Source: Heteronotia binoei (Eukaryota). Taken from it: 64,000 bases of DNA. The notes beneath the pieces were generated by a model, which saw only the letters and a program-made list of their open reading frames with translations, searched no databases and was not told the DNA's origin. The position numbers were made by a program, and so were the translations under genes. Numbering within the stretch: position 1 is the stretch's first letter; each line of letters opens with the position of its first letter. Positions 6,360 to 63,232 of this stretch are shown in pieces. The stretch covers positions 34,844,001-34,908,000 of the forward strand of contig NC_083239.1 in NCBI RefSeq assembly GCF_032191835.1. Reading direction: 5' to 3'.

Positions 6360-7735
6360 AAGAACATAAGAGAAGCCATGTTGGATCAGGCCAATGGCCC
6401 ATCCAGTCCAACACTNNNNNNNNNNNNNNNNNNNNNNNNNNNNNNNNNNNNNNNNNNNNNNNNNNNNNNNNNNNNNNNNNNNNNNNNNNNNNNNNNNNNN
6501 NNNNNNNNNNNNNNNNNNNNNNNNNNNNNNNNNNNNNNNNNNNNNNNNNNNNNNNNNNNNNNNNNNNNNNNNNNNNNNNNNNNNNNNNNNNNNNNNNNAC
6601 TGATGGACCTCTGCTCCATATTTTTATCTAACCCCCTCTTGAAGCTGTCTATGCTTGTAGCTGCCACCACCTCCTGTGGCAGTGAATTCCACATGTTAAT
6701 CACCCTTTGTGTGAAGAAGTACTTCCTTTTATCCATTTTAACCTGACTGCTCAGCAATTTCATCGAATGCCCACGAGTTCTTGTATTGTGAGAAAGGGAG
6801 AAAAGTACTTCTTTCTCTACTTTCTCCATCCCATGCATTATCTTGTAAACCTCTATCATGTCACCCTGCATTCGACGTTTCTCCAAGCTAAAGAGCCCCA
6901 AGCGTTTTAACCTTTCTTCATAGGGAAAGCGTTCCAACCCTTTAATCATTCTAGTTGAACAAGTTAGAGCATGGGACCCAGTACCGAGCCCTGTGGCACC
7001 CCACTCCTTACTGTCCTCCACTGCGAAGACTGTCCATTAATACTCACTCTTTGCTTCCTATTAATTAGCCAGTTTTTGATCCACAAGAGGACCTGTCCTT
7101 TTACTCCATGACTCTCAAGCTTTCTAAGGAGCCTTTGATGAGGAACTTTATCAAAAGCTTTCTGGAAGTCAAGGTAAACAACATCTATTGGGTCTCCTTT
7201 GTCCACACGTTTGTTCACCCCCTCAAAGAAATGTAACAGGTTAGTGAGGCAAGATCTTCCCTTACAGAACCCATTCTGAGTCTTCCTCAATAACTCGTGT
7301 TCATCAATGTGCCTACTCATTCTGTCCTTGATAATGATTTCTACCAAGTTTCCCAGTATTGAAGTCAGACTGACTGGCCTGTAATTTCCCGGATCTCCTC
7401 TGGAACCCTTTTTAAAGATGGGGGTGACATTTGCTACCTTCCAGTCCTCAGGAACGGAGGCAGATTTCAATGAGAGATTACATATTTTTGTCAGAAGATC
7501 CACAAGTTCAACTTTTAGTTCTTTCAGAACTCTTGGATGTATGCCATCCAGACCTGGTGACTTATTAGTTTTTAATTTGTCTATCAGTTGTAGGACCTCC
7601 TCTCTTGTCGCCTCAATCTGACTCAGGTCTTTCAACACCCCTTCCAAAATTAGTGGTTCTGGAGCGGGCAAACACTTCTCATCTTCCACAGTGAAAACGG
7701 AGGCAAAAAATGCATTCAGCTTCTCATTCATTAGT
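6360..7735 (-). mobile_element. CR1 LINE, 5'-truncated and internally deleted
   Basis: RT ORFs 6964-7731 (KSPGLDG, NYRPVSLTS, YLDFQKAFD, GVPQGSVLGP) and 6386-7021 (GLFSLEKRR..FFTQRV); (CTTATGTT) tail; YxDD region is missing. Confidence 0.92.
6416..6598. other. Assembly gap (N run)
   Basis: 183 Ns. Confidence 0.99.
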
Positions 7736-13074: not shown

Positions 13075-14085
13075 TCAGAGCTCCGTCTGAGCAACATTGA
13101 CGTGGTATTCACCTTGAAGATATGAACTTGAGAACTGTCCAGCTCTTTTTCCTCTATTGTTATCTGTCAGACTTTGGCAGCAGGGCCAGCAACACCAGTG
13201 GGGTAGCAAAGTCTGCAGTTTGCGGCACATGCCAATCCAACAGTCAATAAAAGCTTGACGGACTGCCTGGGAGGAGAAGTAGAAGATGACAGGATCTATG
13301 GAGGCATTGAAGGTGCTGAAGAGGAAACCTTCCACTCTCCAGGGAGGGCCCTGTTTTTGTACGAAGCCCACGATGTGGGAAATGTTGAAGGGGCTGAAGC
13401 AGATGACAAAACTGATCAAAGTGGCCACGGCCAGGCCCATGGCTCGTTGCTTCTTGCGGACAGGGAAGCTGGGCAGGGAGTTCAGGATCTGAATAACTTT
13501 CACATAGCAGAAAAGAGTGATGATGAAAGGGAGGCAGAAGAAGACAAGACAGATTTCCAGTCGGATAGGGATGATCACATCAGGGGAGAAATTCTCATAG
13601 CAATGGGAGGTATTAGAAGAGCCTGGAAGGCTCCCGTTGGAAGCTTGGTATTTGGCAATGTAGATAATGCCGTAATGGGAGCAAACCAGCAGCCAGATAA
13701 AGACGCTGGCCGTGACTGCATAAATTGGCTTGCGCGTCAGCTTGTACTTGATAGGATGTCCAATGGACAGGTAGCGATCCACACTGACTGCTGTGAGGAA
13801 AAGGATACTGGTGTATACACTGCCATAGAGGAAGTAGCCAGTGAGTGGGCAGAGCAGAGGAGGAAGAGGCCAAATCGTGTCGGAGGTGACCTCCACCATC
13901 TTGAAGGGGAGAAAAAGGAGAAGGAGGATGTCAGAAATGGTCAGGTTGAACAAGAGGATGTCTATGGGAGTTGGCTTCTTGGACACTTTCAGCAGGAATA
14001 TGTAGAAGGCCAGGAGGTTGGAAGGGAGGCCAGTCAGGAGAATGAAGATGCAGGAAGTAAGCTCCACAGCCTTCAGAACCGTCAT
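13075..14085 (-). CDS. FFAR2: FFAR2-like short-chain fatty acid receptor (class A GPCR), 336 aa, intact, subfamily A
   Basis: Seven hydrophobic segments; GLPSN (TM1), NLTISD (TM2), DRY, CYENF in ECL2 (same as human FFAR2), IRLEIC (Arg5.39), NISH (His6.55), WR (Arg7.35), DPVIFY. One-to-one orthology versus FFAR3 not resolvable by eye. Confidence 0.93.
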   Translation of the reverse strand: MTVLKAVELTSCIFILLTGLPSNLLAFYIFLLKVSKKPTPIDILLFNLTISDILLLLFLPFKMVEVTSDTIWPLPPLLCPLTGYFLYGSVYTSILFLTAVSVDRYLSIGHPIKYKLTRKPIYAVTASVFIWLLVCSHYGIIYIAKYQASNGSLPGSSNTSHCYENFSPDVIIPIRLEICLVFFCLPFIITLFCYVKVIQILNSLPSFPVRKKQRAMGLAVATLISFVICFSPFNISHIVGFVQKQGPPWRVEGFLFSTFNASIDPVIFYFSSQAVRQAFIDCWIGMCRKLQTLLPHWCCWPCCQSLTDNNRGKRAGQFSSSYLQGEYHVNVAQTEL

Positions 14086-27445: not shown

Positions 27446-28066
27446 ATGGCCTCAGAGACTGTTGTCCTCGCTGTCTTCATCTTTACCTTCCTGATCGGTG
27501 TCCCATCCAACCTTCTGGCCTTCTACACGCTCCTGGTGAAACTGTGCCGCAAGCCAACCCCCATAGACCTCCTCTTGTTCAACTTGACCATTTCTGATAT
27601 TCTCCTTCTGCTTTTTCTGCCCTTCAAGATGGTGGAGGTCTCTTTCCACATGACCTGGCCTCTCCCCCCTTCCTTCTGCCCTCTCACCAGTTGCTGCTTC
27701 TACGGAAGTATGTACCAAAGCATCCCTTCCCTCATGACAATCAGTGTGGACCGCTACCTAGGTGTTGCATATCCCATCAAATACAAGTTGCATCGCAGGC
27801 CTGTCTATGCTCTAGTGGTCATCATCGTGCTCTGGTTGTTGGGTTTCTTCCATTGCAGCATTGTCTACATTTTCAGGCATGGAGGCTCCAACGAGAGCAT
27901 TCCGTACTCAGCTAATAGCTCCCGTTGCTTTGAGAATTTCTCCCCTGAGCAGCTCCATGTTGTCTTCTCTCTCCGTCTGGAGCTGTGCCTTGTCTTCTTC
28001 TGCCCCCCTTTCACCATCACACTCTTCTGCTATGTGAACATTTTCTGCATCCTGAATTCCCTTTGA
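27446..28066 (+). pseudogene. FFAR2-like gene truncated after TM5 (206-aa ORF), subfamily A
   Basis: ORF aligns to the 13075-14085 protein through TM1-TM5 (LPFKMVEV, DRYLGV, CFENFSP, LRLELC), then stops at TGA where the sequence switches into a MITE interior (28063-28356). Confidence 0.88.
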
Positions 28067-29051: not shown

Positions 29052-29451
29052 CAGGGATGACCAAACTTGCTCAACGTAAGAGCCACATAAAATAAATGTC
29101 AGATGTTTGAGAGCTATGAGANNNNNNNNNNNNNNNNNNNNNNNNNNNNNNNNNNNNNNNNNNNNNNNNNNNNNNNNNNNNNNNNNNNNNNNNNNNNNNN
29201 NNNNNNNNNNNNNNNNNNNNNNNNNNNNNNNNNNNNNNNNNNNNNNNNNNNNNNNNNNNNNNNNGATGGAGGGAGAGGTGAAAACTTTCAATGCCTTCTC
29301 CAAGGCACTGGCTGGCTTGACTGGGATAAGTGATTTAAAGGGACAAATAATTTCTCCAAGCCAGCCCATGAGGTGATGGGGGCTTCAGAAGCCACACAAA
29401 ATCTGTGAAAGAGCCACATATGGCTCCTGAGCCACAGTTTGGCCACTCCTG
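29052..29451 (+). mobile_element. hAT-type MITE (family G), containing an assembly gap
   Basis: Perfect TSD TTCTAAAT; homologous to 63568-63889. Confidence 0.8.
29122..29264. other. Assembly gap (N run)
   Basis: 143 Ns. Confidence 0.99.
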
Positions 29452-38699: not shown

Positions 38700-39546
38700 A
38701 TCAGCTGAAGAGGCCCAAAGAGTTTGGTATCTTTAGCCTGCACAGAATCCATTCTATACACTCCTGGACCTCCTGATCCTGTATCTGCATAATGTATGAC
38801 TCTCAAAATGTGGGTGAGATTACAGGGGCCAAAGAAAATCGCAACAGATACATCAGCATACTGAACCCTCAGTGAAAACTTCCAAGGAGCCAAGTCACCA
38901 CAAGCAGGCCCTTGCAGTGTTGCTCGCACTGACCTTGGACCTCGGACAGGGAGTCCAGGATGCAGATCACACTGACATAGCAGGAAAGGATGAGGATGAA
39001 AGGGATGCAAAAGAGGACGATGCAGGTTTCAAACCAGAAGGGGCAGATGATCTTCTGCTGTTCATAAAAATCCTTAAAACACACCGCGTTACTGGGGGGG
39101 GGGGGAGCTGAAATGTTTCATTTTTATTAGTGCTCATGGATCTGACTATACAGACACTGCTGCAGTGGGGACCAACAAGCAAAACAGATGAAGATGCCGG
39201 CCACTACTGTGTAGGCCAGCTCTCATTGCAACTTGCACTTAATGGGAAATGCAGCCTCCAGGAAATGGTCCATACTGATTGCTGTGAGAAGAATGCTGAT
39301 GTAGATGCTACAGTGGAAGATGCAGCTACTGGTGGTGCAGAGAATGTTGGGGAAAGGCCACTCCCCCCTGTGGCAGCCTCCACCATTTCAAGTGGAAGAT
39401 AAACAAGAAGCACAATGCTAAGTTGAGCCAGGGTGTGTCTACAGGGTCTGGGTTTTTGCACACATTCACCAGGAATGTGTACGGGGACTGGAGATTGGTA
39501 GGAAAGTGATGATGTTGATAGGAAGAACAACTGTATGGCTGGTCAT
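38700..39546 (-). pseudogene. FFAR2-like pseudogene with multiple frameshifts, subfamily B
   Basis: ATG at 39546 in the conserved cag|aagctgagaggATG context; fragments in different frames: MTSHTVV..ITFL, PTNLQSPYTFLVNVCKNPDPVD, LPLEMVEAA, CFKDFYEQQKIICPFWFETCIVLFCIPF, FFGPCNLTHI. Left end approximate. Confidence 0.88.
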
Positions 39547-40092: not shown

Positions 40093-42502
40093 TATGGGCG
40101 GCGAGCCTATTTTGGCTCGCCCCCGGGGCTTGATGGACCCGGAACGGTTCCAAACAGCCCTGAGGGATCCCTGGCCCACTGGCAATTCCCTCGATGACCT
40201 GGTGGAAGTCTGGCAGAGCCAGCTATCCAGGGCTATCGATGGCCAGCTATCCAGGGCTATCCAGGGCTATCGATGAAATTGCACCTCGGCGCCCTCTGCG
40301 CCCTCGCAAGAGGCTGGCACCATGGTATACCTTGGAGTTACGCCAGCTGAAGCAAGGGCTCAGACGACTAGAGAGACGGTGGAGGCATACTCGGGACGAA
40401 GCGACGAGAACATCCTATAGAACGCTTATGAGGTCTTATGAGATGGCAGTCAAGGCTGCAAAGAAAGAATACTTTGCAGCCAAGATTGCATCTGCAAAAT
40501 CGCGCCCAGCACAATTGTTTAGAGTAATTGGAGATCTTATAACATTGCCACAAGGCAAACCAAATATTAGGGAATTAGAAATAGGCTGTGAGGCATTTGC
40601 AAAATATTTTGCAGATAAAATCTCATCGCTCCGCCAAGACCTGCCTATCACATTAGACACAGTAAGTGAAACTGAGGCTCCGCGCCTGTCTTCAGATTTA
40701 GTACTGGACCACTTCGACCCACTCAGCCTGGAGGAAGTTGATGGAATTCTCTCTGCTGCTCGCCCAACAACATGTGATTTGGACCCTTGCCCCTCTTGGC
40801 TGATTAAATCCTGCCAGAGGGAGCTTAGATGTCCCCTACGGGACATCATAAATAGATCCCTCCTAGAGGGGCATTTTCCAATGCCTCTGAAAGAGGCCTT
40901 GGTCCGCCCCCTCTTGAAAAAACCTACAGCAGACCCGGTCGAATTGGCAAACTACCGACCGGTGTCCAATTTACCATTTTTAGGTAAAATTATCGAGAGG
41001 GCAGTGGCGTTGCAGCTACAGAGATTTCTAGATGACGCTTCTGTCTTAGACCCGTGCCAGTCTGGCTTCCGGCCGGGCCACGGGACGGAGACGGTCCTGG
41101 TCGCCTTGGTGGATGACCTCCAGGGGCAACTGGATCGAGGCGGTGCAGCAATACTGATGTTATTAGATCTGTCGGCTGCATTTGATACAGTTGACCATCG
41201 GTTGCTGATCCACCGCCTCGCCGACATAGGGGTTGAGGGGCTGGCCTTACAATGGCTCTCCTCCTTCCTCATGGGTCGGGGACAGAGGGTGGCGATTGGG
41301 GGTGAGCGATCCCAGAGGCGCACACTAGACTGTGGGGTGCCCCAGGGAGCAGTTCTCTCCCCGATGTTATTCAACATCTATATGCGCCCCCTCGCCCAGA
41401 TTGCCCGGAGATTTGGGCTGGGTTGCCATCAATATGCAGATGACACCCAGCTCTATCTACTAATGGACGGCCGGCCCGCCTCCGCCCCGGGGAACCTGGA
41501 CCGGGCTTTGCAGGCAGTTGCAACGTGGCTTAGACTGAGTGGGCTGAAGTTAAATCCAGCGAAGACAGAGGTTCTCCATGTGGGTCGTGGCACTCTGGGG
41601 AAGGAAATATCTCTCCCGGCCTTTGACGAGGCGCCGCTGAAGACGGCGCAGCCGGTGAAGAGCCTGGGCGTCTTACTAGAGCCTTCATTATCAATGGAGG
41701 CCCAGATAACAGCCACTGCCAAATCAGCATTCTTCCACCTGAGGCGGGTGAGGCAGCTGGCCCCTTTCCTAGAGCGTCGGGACCTAGCAATGGTGATCCA
41801 CGCGACGGTCACCTCAAGATTGCACTACTGTAACGCTCTCTACATGGGGCTGCCTCTGTACCGGACCCGGGAGCTGCAGCTAGTTCAGAACGCGGCGGCC
41901 AGGCTGTTACTTGGTCTCCCAAGATGGGAACATATACGGCCGGGGCTGCGCGGACTGCACTGGCTGCCAATCGTATACCGGATCCAGTACAAAGTGCTGG
42001 TCATAACCTTTAAAGCCCTATATGGCCAAGGACCGACCTACCTGAGGGACCATCTCTCCCCATATGAGCCCCAGAGAGCACTGAGGTCAGTGGGGAAAAG
42101 CAGACTGAATATCCCTGGGCCAAAAGAAGTTAAACTTCAAAGCACCCGCACTCGGGCCTTTTCCGTTGCGGCCCCACAACTCTGGAACCAACTCCCAGAG
42201 GAGGTGCGGGCTCTGCGGAACTTAGACCAGTTCCGCAGGGCCTGCAAGACCGCCCTCTTCAAACAGGCGTTCACCAATAACTAAATTTAATGTTTACCGC
42301 CAGATTAATAACGTTTACCGCCAGTGTTAATTTAGGAATGTTTTAATTAATTATTGACTATTGACTGGTTTTTAATGTGAATTTTAATGTGAATTTAATG
42401 TTTTTATTATTGTATTGTTTACTTGAAATGCTGTTAGCCGCCCTGAGCCTGGTTCGGCGGGGGAGGGCGGGATATAAATAAAATTTTACATTACATTACA
42501 TT
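40093..42502 (+). mobile_element. L2 LINE, 5'-truncated (~2.4 kb), with an open 696-aa RT-containing ORF (40194-42284)
   Basis: NYRPVSNL, QSGFRPGHGTET, LLDLSAAFDTV, GVPQGAVLSP, YADD, HWLP..YK motifs; (TTACA)n tail; ACATTG on both sides (40087-40092 / 42503-42508). Confidence 0.95.
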
Positions 42503-48392: not shown

Positions 48393-49499
48393 CTAATGTT
48401 CCATGTGTATTTGGAACTTGGTACAATATGCTTCTTTTTCAGGGTTCAGTGCACTAACTTCCCAGGTCTTTGCGATGCGAACGCTGGCGGGGGATTCATT
48501 GGATGCACCAGTCCCGCCCAGTCCACTCGAAGTGGATAATCCAGCAGCCCCTGCTCCCTCATCATTGTCTCTGGGTTCCTTGCAGCAAGGCAAAGAGCAG
48601 CGTGATAAAATGGGACGGACTCTGAGGTACATGCCAGCCCAGCAAACACCGACGTTTCGTCGGATGGCGTTGGACGAGAAGAAGAAGATGAAAGGATCCA
48701 AGCAGGTGTTGAAGGAGCTGAGGGCAAAAGTATACTCTCTCCACGTTGGGTCTTTATAATAGATTACTCCAAAGATGTGGGAGATGTTAAAGGGGGCAAA
48801 GCAAAGAGTGTAATTGAGCAAAGTGACCAGAGCCAAGCCCACGGCCCTTTGTTTCTTGCGGGCCTGGATGTTAGGCAGGGAGGCCAAGATGCGGATTACA
48901 TTGACATAACAGAAGAAGGTGATGACAAAAGGAATGCAAAAGAGAACAATGCAGATTTCGAGCCGGAAGGGGTAGATGATCTTCCTCTGCTCTTCGTTGA
49001 ACTCCTTGAAACACACCACATGGTTGGAAGGGCGTTCTGACGACGGGATCGAATCATTGCGTAGGGACCTCACGACAAAGACTGTGCCGCAGTGGGAGCC
49101 AACAAATATCCAGATGAAGATGCTGGCCATCACTGCGTAGGCGGCCTTGCGTTTCATCCTGTACTTGATGGGAAACACCACCCCCAGGTAGCGGTCCACA
49201 CTGATGGCTGTGAGGAAAAGAGTGCTGATGGAGAGGCTGCTGTGGAAGGTGCAGCTGGTGACGGTGCACAGGGCTCTGTGGAAAGGCCATGCATTGTTTC
49301 GGGCTGCCTCCACCATTTTGAGAGGAAGGAAAACCAGAAGGATGACGTCCGATAAAGTCAAGTTGAGCAAGAGGATGTCTATAGGGGCCGGCTTCTTGCG
49401 GACTTTCACTAAGAATGTGTAGAAGGCCAAGAGGTTGGAAGGGAAGCCGATCAGGAAGGTGATGACATAGATAGCAAGAATAACTGTAAGGTTGGTCAT
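48393..49499 (-). CDS. FFAR2: FFAR2-like receptor, 368 aa, intact, subfamily B
   Basis: Uninterrupted 7TM ORF with GFPSN, NLTLSD, DRY, FRLEIC, NISH, WRE and DPFIFF motifs; long Ser/Thr-rich C-tail. Confidence 0.95.
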   Translation of the reverse strand: MTNLTVILAIYVITFLIGFPSNLLAFYTFLVKVRKKPAPIDILLLNLTLSDVILLVFLPLKMVEAARNNAWPFHRALCTVTSCTFHSSLSISTLFLTAISVDRYLGVVFPIKYRMKRKAAYAVMASIFIWIFVGSHCGTVFVVRSLRNDSIPSSERPSNHVVCFKEFNEEQRKIIYPFRLEICIVLFCIPFVITFFCYVNVIRILASLPNIQARKKQRAVGLALVTLLNYTLCFAPFNISHIFGVIYYKDPTWREYTFALSSFNTCLDPFIFFFSSNAIRRNVGVCWAGMYLRVRPILSRCSLPCCKEPRDNDEGAGAAGLSTSSGLGGTGASNESPASVRIAKTWEVSALNPEKEAYCTKFQIHMEH

Positions 49500-62125: not shown

Positions 62126-63232
62126 CTAGTGTTCTGGATGTCGATGGAACTTGGTGCAGTATGCTTCTTGCTCAGCATCCAGCGCGCTGAGCTCCCAGGT
62201 CTTTGCGGTGTGGCCAAAGGAACAGGATTCAGTGGACGTGCCAGTCCCTCCCAGTCCACTTGAAGTAGATAATGCACCAGTTCCTGCTCCTTCATCGTTG
62301 TCTCTGGGTTCCTTGCAGCAAGGCAAAGAGCAGCGTGATAAAATGGGACGGACTCTGCGGTACATGCCAGCCCAGCAAACATTGACGTTTCGTCGGATGG
62401 CGTTGGATGAGAAGAAGAAGATGAAAGGATCCAAGCAGGTGTTGAAGGAGCTGAGAGCAAAGGTATATTCTCTCCAGTTAGGGTCTTCATAACTTATCAC
62501 TCCAAAGACGTGGGAGATGTTAAAAGGGCCAAAGCAAAAAGCGTAATTGAGCAAAGTGACCAGAGCCAAGCCCACGGCCCTTTGTTTCTTGCGGGCCTCG
62601 ACGTTAGGCAGGGAGGCCAGGATTCGGATCACACTGACATAACAGAAAGAGGTGATGATGAAAGGGATGCAAAAGAGGACGAGGCACAATTCAAGCCGGA
62701 AGGGGTAGATGATCTTCTTCTGCTCTTCGTTGAACTCCTTGAAGCACACAACGTGGTTGGAAGGCAGCTGTGAGGGTGGTATTGAATCGTTGCGGAGAGT
62801 CCTCAATACAAAGACCGTGCTGCAGTGGGAACCGACCACCACCCAGATGAAGATGCTGGCTACCACTGCATAGATTGACCGGCGGTTCAGCTTGTACTTG
62901 ATGGGAAATGCCACCCCCAGGTAGCGGTCCACGCTGATGGCCGTGAGGAAAAGAGTGCTGATGTAGATGCTGCTATGGAAGGTGCAGCTGGTGACAGTGC
63001 AGAGGGCCCTGTGGAAAGGCCACTCATTGTCTTGGGCTGCCTCTGTCATCTTGAGGGGAAGAAAGATCAGAAGCATGATGTCCGATAAAGTCAAGTTGAG
63101 CAAGAGAATGTCTATGGGGGTTGGCTTCTTGCAGACTTTCATTAAGAATGTGTAGAGGGACAGGAGGTTGGAAGGGAAGCCGATCAGGAAGGTGATGACG
63201 TAGATAACAAGAATCACTGTGAGATTCGTCAT
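62126..63232 (-). CDS. FFAR2: FFAR2-like receptor, 368 aa, intact, subfamily B (close paralog of 48393-49499)
   Basis: Same length as and colinear with 48393-49499; DRY, FRLELC, NISH, WRE and DPFIFF motifs. Confidence 0.95.
   Translation of the reverse strand: MTNLTVILVIYVITFLIGFPSNLLSLYTFLMKVCKKPTPIDILLLNLTLSDIMLLIFLPLKMTEAAQDNEWPFHRALCTVTSCTFHSSIYISTLFLTAISVDRYLGVAFPIKYKLNRRSIYAVVASIFIWVVVGSHCSTVFVLRTLRNDSIPPSQLPSNHVVCFKEFNEEQKKIIYPFRLELCLVLFCIPFIITSFCYVSVIRILASLPNVEARKKQRAVGLALVTLLNYAFCFGPFNISHVFGVISYEDPNWREYTFALSSFNTCLDPFIFFFSSNAIRRNVNVCWAGMYRRVRPILSRCSLPCCKEPRDNDEGAGTGALSTSSGLGGTGTSTESCSFGHTAKTWELSALDAEQEAYCTKFHRHPEH

Follow-up and report, generated by a model that had tools for sequence, protein, structure and literature searches.

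A cluster of FFAR2-family receptor genes in the gecko Heteronotia binoei is analysed here, located in a 64,000-nucleotide stretch of contig NC_083239.1 (forward-strand positions 34,844,001 to 34,908,000), which is referred to as the window and within which all coordinates are given. Three intact single-exon genes of this family lie on its minus strand. The 13 kb gene (13075-14085, open reading frame (ORF) of 336 amino acids, protein P0100) is an FFAR2-like gene of subfamily A, and the 48 kb gene (48393-49499, P0001) and the 62 kb gene (62126-63232, P0006), each with an intact ORF of 368 amino acids, belong to a second group, clade B, the 62 kb gene being located upstream of the 48 kb gene in the direction of transcription. 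The 48 kb protein matches the Pfam family 7tm_1 (E 1e-39), all FFAR2-family copies score as rhodopsin-type, and the DRY motif, the disulfide cysteines and the motif of transmembrane helix 7 (TM7; other helices likewise) are unbroken in the 48 kb gene. By fold, by their two arginines and by His4.56 and His6.55, the three intact genes are assigned to the FFAR1-3 family, and activation by fatty acids is predicted for them. The two B genes, on which we focus, are FFAR2-family genes specific to this lineage and have a variant ligand pocket, and the difference between the two paralogs is clearly a selected one.

Residue positions in the B proteins were related to human FFA2, which is the best match of the 48 kb protein in a phmmer search against PDB chains (E 9e-81). 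The alignment is gapless from Cys3.25 to the arginine of the E/DRY motif and likewise from the cysteine of extracellular loop 2 (ECL2) onward, and therefore His86 is placed at 3.33, Ser90 at 3.37, Lys165 at the position of human Glu166 and residue 182 at 5.42. Structure-based alignment to FFAR2 structures determined by cryo-electron microscopy (cryo-EM) upholds this correspondence. The AlphaFold2 model of the 48 kb protein, with seven helices and helix 8 (mean predicted local distance difference test (pLDDT) score 79.8, most helices above 90), superimposes on acetate-bound FFAR2 (8j24_D) with a root-mean-square deviation of 1.4 Å and a target-normalised TM-score of 0.96, and on nine further FFA2 entries at 1.4-3.6 Å. 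The top 16 PDB fold matches of the model are FFA2, FFA3 and FFA1 structures, with FFA2 ahead of the other two.

A preliminary description of the window had reported a remodelled pocket in the B genes, and all its residues and coordinates proved correct on recheck. All three intact genes encode His4.56, Arg5.39, His6.55 and Arg7.35, and both B proteins have the carboxylate anchor as Arg179 and Arg254 and the two histidines as His136 and His241. Residues 84-90 read TFHSSLS in the 48 kb gene and TFHSSIY in the 62 kb gene. In the former, all codons being on the minus strand, His86 (3.33; Tyr90 in human FFA2) is encoded by CAC at 49242-49244 and Ser90 (3.37; human Tyr94) by TCC at 49230-49232, next to Leu89 (3.36, CTC; both codons together 49230-49235), and the corresponding codons of the 62 kb gene (62963-62968) specify Ile89 (ATC) and Tyr90 (TAC, 62963-62965). 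The TM4 segment from His136 (4.56) over Cys137 (4.57) and Gly138 (4.58, GGC) through Phe141 (4.61) is located at 49077-49094, with Ser138 (AGC, 62819-62821) in place of the glycine in the 62 kb gene, and Ile182 of TM5 (5.42, ATC, 48954-48956; human Leu183) is replaced there by Leu182 (TTG, 62687-62689). The states at 3.36, 3.37, 4.58 and 5.42 are those that define the two receptor types described below. In both B genes the ECL2 motif CFKEF occupies residues 163-167 (48999-49013 in the 48 kb gene), so that Phe164, Lys165 and Glu166 stand at human Tyr165, Glu166 and Asn167. Beyond the preliminary description, both B genes furthermore replace Phe87 (3.30) by Cys (Cys83, 49251-49253 in the 48 kb gene, a position of TM3-TM4 closure), Ile145 (4.61) by Phe, Gln148 by Arg, Tyr165 by Phe and Tyr238 (6.51) by Phe (Phe237, 48789-48791 in the 48 kb gene), and they differ from each other at 3.36 and 4.58 as well. 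The carboxylate-side network Tyr3.33/Tyr6.51/Tyr165/Glu166 of FFA2 is represented by His/Phe/Phe/Lys in both.

In cryo-EM structures of FFA2, the carboxylate is held by Tyr90, Arg180, Tyr238, His242 and Arg255, and replacing any one of them by alanine causes a loss of more than 100-fold (PMC11947310). Tyr165 hydrogen-bonds butyrate, Gln148 supports Arg180, and the tail pocket is formed by Cys141, Val144, Val179 and Leu183 (bioRxiv 10.1101/2023.08.20.553924). Glu166 was modelled as the salt-bridge partner of Arg255, and the triple substitution E166L/L183M/C184A gives FFA2 an FFA3-like ligand selectivity (PMC3060514). Tyr94 (3.37) is absent from the ligand-contact list of FFA2 and forms hydrogen bonds with Asn239 (6.52) in the inactive and with His242 (6.55) in the active receptor (PMC11947310); in the FFA1 crystal structure the carboxylate of the ligand is bound by Tyr91 (3.37), and models of FFA2 built on FFA1 put Tyr94 at the ligand, as summarised in PMC4561419. 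The earlier statement that the altered positions line the FFAR2 pocket thus stands for 3.33, Tyr165, Glu166 and 5.42, and only partly for 3.37, which is not a ligand contact in the cryo-EM structures. The exclusion of longer chains by FFA2 is attributed to TM3-TM4 closure by Leu84, Phe87, Thr142 and Ile145, and FFA2 carrying F87A/T142G/I145A responds to palmitate (PMC11947310).

Relatives of the B proteins at 70-87% identity were recovered by a word-based search in geckos only (Paroedura, two Gekko species, Euleptes, Sphaerodactylus and Eublepharis), and the next matches have an identity of ~55% or lower. In a maximum-likelihood tree, 17 gecko proteins form a single clade, clade B, with 100% support in the Shimodaira-Hasegawa-like approximate likelihood ratio test (SH-aLRT) and a stem length of 0.48. 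Among the matches this clade is restricted to geckos and is separate from the clade of lizard, turtle and frog FFAR2-like proteins; long-branch effects may account for its placement outside all remaining FFAR2-like proteins of tetrapods. The B genes are not one-to-one orthologues of tetrapod FFAR2 in this tree. A literature search for gecko FFAR2 found no report, its matches being only unrelated papers on GeCKO libraries, and a check for RNA evidence gave no listed run for the 48 kb gene. Clade B retains Arg5.39, Arg7.35, His4.56 and His6.55, and also Lys2.60, Glu2.63, Cys4.57 and Glu5.41. It carries His3.33 (in every clade-B protein compared except P0019, which has Leu), Cys3.30, Phe4.61, Phe6.51, usually Arg at the position of Gln148, mostly Phe at that of Tyr165, and Lys or Arg at that of Glu166 (17 of 17 proteins). 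The sole non-gecko His3.33 in the survey described below is found in the FFAR2-like protein P0096 of Pogona vitticeps, the pocket of which is otherwise of the ordinary FFA2 type, and looks like an independent occurrence.

Within clade B, two types can be distinguished by four linked residues. The S type, to which the 48 kb gene belongs, comprises six gecko proteins with Leu or Gln at 3.36, Ser3.37, Gly4.58 and Ile5.42, whereas the Y type, which includes the 62 kb gene, comprises 11 with Ile3.36, Tyr3.37, Ser4.58 and Leu5.42. The linkage is perfect (6/6 and 11/11), and that Ser3.37 is always accompanied by Gly4.58 and Leu or Gln at 3.36 had not been flagged in the preliminary description. S-type proteins occur in Heteronotia, Paroedura, two Gekko species, Euleptes and Sphaerodactylus. 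In a survey of 138 family members, defined as proteins with Cys3.25, Arg3.50, Arg5.39 and Arg7.35 and widened, at positions 3.37 and 3.33 only, by a search of representatives of 50%-identity clusters (a coarse set, with 46 representatives at E <=1e-30), 130 carry Tyr3.37, and Ser3.37 is found solely in the six gecko S-type proteins. The difference between Ser and Tyr in the two window genes is therefore not a matter of chance, as it recurs in six versus 11 gecko proteins. The Y state is present in all Eublepharis copies, including unannotated ones, and in all outgroups from fish to lizards, which indicates that the S state is derived. Eublepharis macularius has at least five clade-B copies within ~60 kb (loci L008 and L009), all of the Y type, one of which (L009, 6380-7490, minus strand) has an in-frame stop; another, of 338 amino acids, carries Leu3.33 and Gln5.39 and, because of these two residues, has probably lost the carboxylate anchor. 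Positions 114, 116 and 118 of intracellular loop 2 (ICL2) also differ between S and Y types in four species; they were dropped from the type signature, being unlinked in Euleptes and in the third Gekko kuhli copy. A search of PMC11947310 for data on ICL2 found none.

The 48 kb and 62 kb proteins differ at 66 of 368 residues (82% identity), with a synonymous divergence (dS) of 0.416 and a nonsynonymous divergence (dN) of 0.097, that is, a ratio of 0.23 (Nei-Gojobori method, as for all such values here). Between orthologues, dN/dS in TM3-TM5 is 0.08-0.18 for the S type and 0.14-0.24 for the Y type. Heteronotia, Paroedura, Gekko japonicus and Sphaerodactylus share one arrangement, with the Y gene ~12-26 kb upstream of the S gene and both on one strand. 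Different parts of the genes have different histories, as gauged by regional trees and by permutation of identical run lengths. In the tree of TM1-2 and TM6-7, the paralogs of a species come out together (100/99 in Sphaerodactylus, 90/97 in Gekko), and the approximately unbiased (AU) test rejects S-type monophyly (p 5e-5), whereas in the tree of TM3-5 a branch sets the S types apart, with support of 95/94 for the three gekkonids and 64/63 when Sphaerodactylus is included. The Gekko japonicus paralogs (L003, L004) share an identical run of 239 nucleotides (codons ~196-275, TM5-TM7), which none of 5000 shuffles reached and which contrasts with a TM3-TM5 region differing at about one quarter of sites; this run is a recent gene-conversion tract. 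In Sphaerodactylus, a 94-nucleotide run was reached by 59 of 5000 shuffles. Paralog dS within species is higher in TM3-5 than in the rest of the gene in Heteronotia (0.53/0.27), Gekko (0.57/0.13) and Sphaerodactylus (0.25/0.15); Paroedura is an exception, with 0.41 in TM3-5 versus 0.50 elsewhere and no dip. The two Euleptes types form a mosaic, alike at 114-132 and distinct at 89/90, 138 and 182. Such a pattern is expected where conversion homogenises tandem copies and selection rejects tracts across particular sites, an explanation also put forward for the FFAR2 cluster of the chicken (Meslin et al. 2015, PMC4453067), and the conservation of the quartet in spite of conversion, together with the low dN/dS, argues for a selected functional divergence.

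The window holds further remnants of the family. An ORF of 206 amino acids at 27446-28066 (plus strand) encodes a cut-off FFAR2-like protein of TM1-TM5 only, with 91% identity to Heteronotia P0039, and no TM6-7 coding sequence follows it in any frame. This copy is a member of a third gecko clade, which shares Cys3.30 and Arg148 with clade B, yet has Tyr3.33 and Glu166. A decayed FFAR-like relic at 38783-39505 (minus strand) matches residues 19-250 of the 48 kb protein in pieces (~45% identity) and is adjoined by a reverse-transcriptase ORF of a long interspersed nuclear element (LINE; 696 amino acids, 40194-42284, plus strand). Two overlapping reverse-transcriptase-like LINE ORFs at 6386-7731 (minus strand) are broken by a run of N at 6416-6598, and a second N run is located at 29122-29264. 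The 13 kb gene retains Tyr3.33, Tyr3.37 and CYENF, with FLYGSVY in TM3, and is characterised by Tyr4.57, Gly4.58, Leu3.32, Ile5.42 and Phe6.51, Tyr4.57 being common to its Euleptes orthologue P0045. Both B proteins end in Ser/Thr/Gly-rich C-terminal tails of ~60 residues (48393-48570 and 62126-62300, minus strand; pLDDT below 50), which are longer than the tail of human FFA2, are kept among gecko clade-B proteins and could contain phosphorylation sites.

What the sequences show is which residues are present, how far they are conserved and constrained, and the traces of conversion; from this we infer an effect on ligand recognition or signalling, and we consider it probable that the 48 kb and 62 kb genes form a functional tandem pair within a gecko FFAR2 branch and that their pockets diverged under selection, the S type having an altered agonist range or threshold. 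Clade B keeps the core of two arginines and two histidines for carboxylate binding, and the surrounding hydroxyl and acid partners have been replaced (Tyr3.33 by His, Tyr6.51 by Phe, Tyr165 mostly by Phe, Glu166 by Lys or Arg, Gln148 mostly by Arg), and Cys in place of Phe3.30, together with Phe4.61, would loosen the TM3-TM4 closure throughout the clade. The downstream copy would then have acquired the quartet (Ile3.36 to Leu or Gln, Tyr3.37 to Ser, Ser4.58 to Gly, Leu5.42 to Ile) after the split from Eublepharidae, or the quartet would have been lost in Eublepharidae, and selection would since hold these residues apart from the upstream copy as conversion continues to homogenise the rest of both genes. 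Loss of Tyr3.37 would remove a hydrogen-bond partner of Asn6.52 and His6.55 and open space beneath the carboxylate site, and Gly4.58 beside Cys3.30 and Phe4.61 would create an FFA1-like TM3-TM4 gate. Consequently, the S type may respond to another range of agonists than the Y type, larger or longer carboxylates being the leading guess, and/or have another activation threshold. A more specific version, in which the S-type gene is a receptor for medium- or long-chain or bulkier carboxylates derived from FFAR2 stock, with a rebuilt FFA1-like lateral TM3-TM4 entry and an emptied Tyr3.37 site protected from conversion by its short-chain-type neighbour since before the split of Gekkonidae and Sphaerodactylidae, is speculative and rather unlikely; if it were true, the S type would be a natural counterpart of the engineered palmitate-responsive FFA2 triple mutant. 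The earlier proposal that the paralogs are tuned to different carboxylates gains from the finding that their difference is conserved, constrained and conversion-resistant, which favours tuning, although the preferred acids are not readable from sequence. The idea that longer or branched acids gain access when Tyr3.37 is lost is a guess; longer acids are plausible for the 48 kb receptor because Cys3.30, Gly4.58 and Phe4.61 come near the FFA1 gate, which is partly a different reason from the one originally offered.

Several observations weigh against this explanation. The TM3-5 partition was picked after the diagnostic residues had been located, which weakens the regional tests, and the evidence of conversion within Heteronotia itself is weak, as its 56-nucleotide identical run was reached by 228 of 5000 shuffles. 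Furthermore, S-type monophyly in TM3-5 depends on the eight codons that are fixed between the types in the four species with DNA. After their removal, the two Sphaerodactylus genes group together even in this region (99/96), and monophyly is rejected by the AU test (p 0.01; third positions, p 0.002). A single origin consequently requires conversion on a fine scale, in between the sites that were kept. In Sphaerodactylus, the flank of the S gene tends towards the other S flanks without deciding orthology. On the pharmacological side, Leu183Ala leaves the potency of short-chain fatty acids (SCFAs) at human FFA2 unaltered (bioRxiv 10.1101/2023.08.20.553924), which means that Ile versus Leu at 5.42 may matter little alone, and the opening of FFA1 also depends on a kink at Pro3.35 (PMC4561419), in place of which the gecko B genes have Ser (Ser88 in the 48 kb gene).

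One alternative is that Gekkonidae and the sampled Sphaerodactylidae (Sphaerodactylus and Euleptes) each duplicated the gene and gained the S state on their own. In Sphaerodactylus and in Euleptes, the two paralogs of the genus come out as a pair in whole-gene and neutral-site trees, and the S-Y dS of Sphaerodactylus in TM3-5 (0.25) is lower than its orthologue dS (0.46-0.63), as such a history would predict. It would, however, call for three occurrences of the same four to eight replacements, among them a two-step codon change from CTG to TTT at 4.52 that is shared by all four S types with DNA; gene order is conserved, conversion tracts are demonstrated, and the Euleptes mosaic retains precisely the diagnostic differences. 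We regard parallel origin as improbable, and a single origin is favoured because gene order is kept, the CTG to TTT change is shared, the flanks go by type (within Gekkonidae, the DNA downstream of the genes is orthologous by type; upstream of the 62 kb gene the window end leaves 768 nucleotides), and parallel origins need identical replacements. Parallel origin, if true, would be even stronger evidence of selection on these residues, and to judge from the sequences the quartet is under selection in either case. Another alternative is that Ser3.37 is neutral or mildly damaging in a redundant duplicate drifting to loss. The cluster does shed copies, as illustrated by the fragment and the relic in the window and by the Eublepharis copy with an in-frame stop, but the S-type ORFs are intact with their core motifs unbroken, Ser is kept in six species, and the orthologue dN/dS in TM3-5 is below that of the Y type, which makes drift very unlikely.

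Two further alternatives accept selection on the receptors and assign it another target. The two paralogs may bind the same acids, with the quartet mainly altering activation or coupling, that is, basal activity, efficacy or G-protein/arrestin bias. Position 3.36 lies beneath the pocket beside the TM6 toggle region in class A receptors, the S type in four species also differs at the three ICL2 positions, and the FFA2 cryo-EM work assigns Tyr94 to an inactive-to-active hydrogen-bond switch, not to ligand contact (PMC11947310). Yet it is the quartet that is always linked, whereas the ICL2 differences are unlinked in Euleptes and the third Gekko kuhli copy; the literature places 4.58 in the gate and 5.42 in the tail pocket, and Tyr3.37 of FFA1 does bind the ligand carboxylate (PMC4561419). 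We therefore treat a pure effect on activation as a possible, though less probable, explanation. More doubtful is the idea that clade B no longer senses SCFAs and responds to other anions, such as dicarboxylates or hydroxy or keto acids, or in a pH-dependent manner. Three tyrosine hydroxyls important in human FFA2 (Tyr90, Tyr165, Tyr238) are gone, the Glu166 partner of Arg255 is swapped for a cation, up to three cationic or titratable groups (His3.33, the ECL2 Lys or Arg, Arg148) are added near the arginines, and the clade sits on a long stem. Nevertheless, the four canonical carboxylate residues are kept, together with Lys2.60, Glu2.63, Cys4.57 and Glu5.41, and FFA3 also lacks Tyr3.33 and Glu166 yet binds SCFAs (PMC4561419, PMC3060514).

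FFA2 and FFA3 are drug targets whose selectivity for chain length and ligand has been explained only lately, by cryo-EM and mutagenesis. With selected pocket divergence as the preferred explanation, the gecko pair can be viewed as a natural experiment, in which the steady differences between two receptors of ~82% identity reduce to four residues at or beside structurally singled-out positions. As conversion wipes out neutral differences, the surviving residues mark selected sites and provide a short natural list for testing FFA2-type selectivity and activation; should the receptors prove pharmacologically alike, the case would be one of ordinary paralog variation.

Among the human receptors, FFA2 is the best sequence match of the 48 kb protein (275 bits, ~42% identity) and its best fold match (root-mean-square deviation 1.4-2.0 Å), the fold E-values giving the same order of FFA2, FFA3 and FFA1 as the bit scores, and the two have in common Arg5.39, Arg7.35, His4.56, His6.55, Lys2.60, Glu2.63, Cys4.57, Glu5.41, Asn6.52 and the ECL2 disulfide. 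Unlike human FFA2, the 48 kb gene, alone of the B pair, has Ser3.37 (Tyr in FFA2) and Gly4.58 (Thr in FFA2). Human FFA3, the second match (245 bits), likewise lacks the hydroxyl of Tyr3.33 (Phe96) and the ECL2 glutamate (Leu171), and it departs from FFA2 at 5.42 and 4.61; selectivity between FFA2 and FFA3 is ascribed to these positions (PMC4561419, PMC3060514). The states themselves differ, as FFA3 has Phe3.33, an ECL2 Leu, Tyr4.61, Met5.42, Tyr3.37 and Tyr6.51, whereas the B genes have His and Lys at the first two. Human FFA1 is more distant (131 bits, ~31% identity), but the 48 kb gene resembles it at Val3.27, Cys3.30 (Val in FFA1), Gly4.58 and Phe4.61, of which the 62 kb gene differs at 4.58 (Ser). 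The lateral TM3-TM4 entry of FFA1 is formed by the gate residues Val3.27, Gly4.58 and Phe4.61 and the small Val3.30 (PMC11947310). In contrast, the Pro3.35 kink, Leu4.57, Asn6.55 and Tyr3.37 at the carboxylate of FFA1 are replaced by Ser3.35, Cys4.57, His6.55 and Ser3.37 in the 48 kb gene.

That a single residue of TM4 can tune chain length has a precedent in bovine FFA2 and the human C141G variant, in which a natural change of a small TM4 residue in the floor of the pocket leads to a preference for C5-C6 acids (cited in bioRxiv 10.1101/2023.08.20.553924); that change is at 4.57, whereas in the gecko B genes 4.57 is still Cys and the variable site is 4.58. At the level of the gene cluster, the closest parallel is the FFAR2 cluster of the chicken, likewise a sauropsid lineage-specific tandem array with pervasive conversion, in which residues near the binding groove seem spared (PMC4453067), and the gecko genes thus represent a second sauropsid case of an FFAR2 cluster under conversion and selection near the binding groove. 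The chicken array consists of ~23 recent copies with 87-99% identity (PMC4453067), whereas the gecko genes are of two old and stable types, distinguished by a four-residue signature that is maintained across families.

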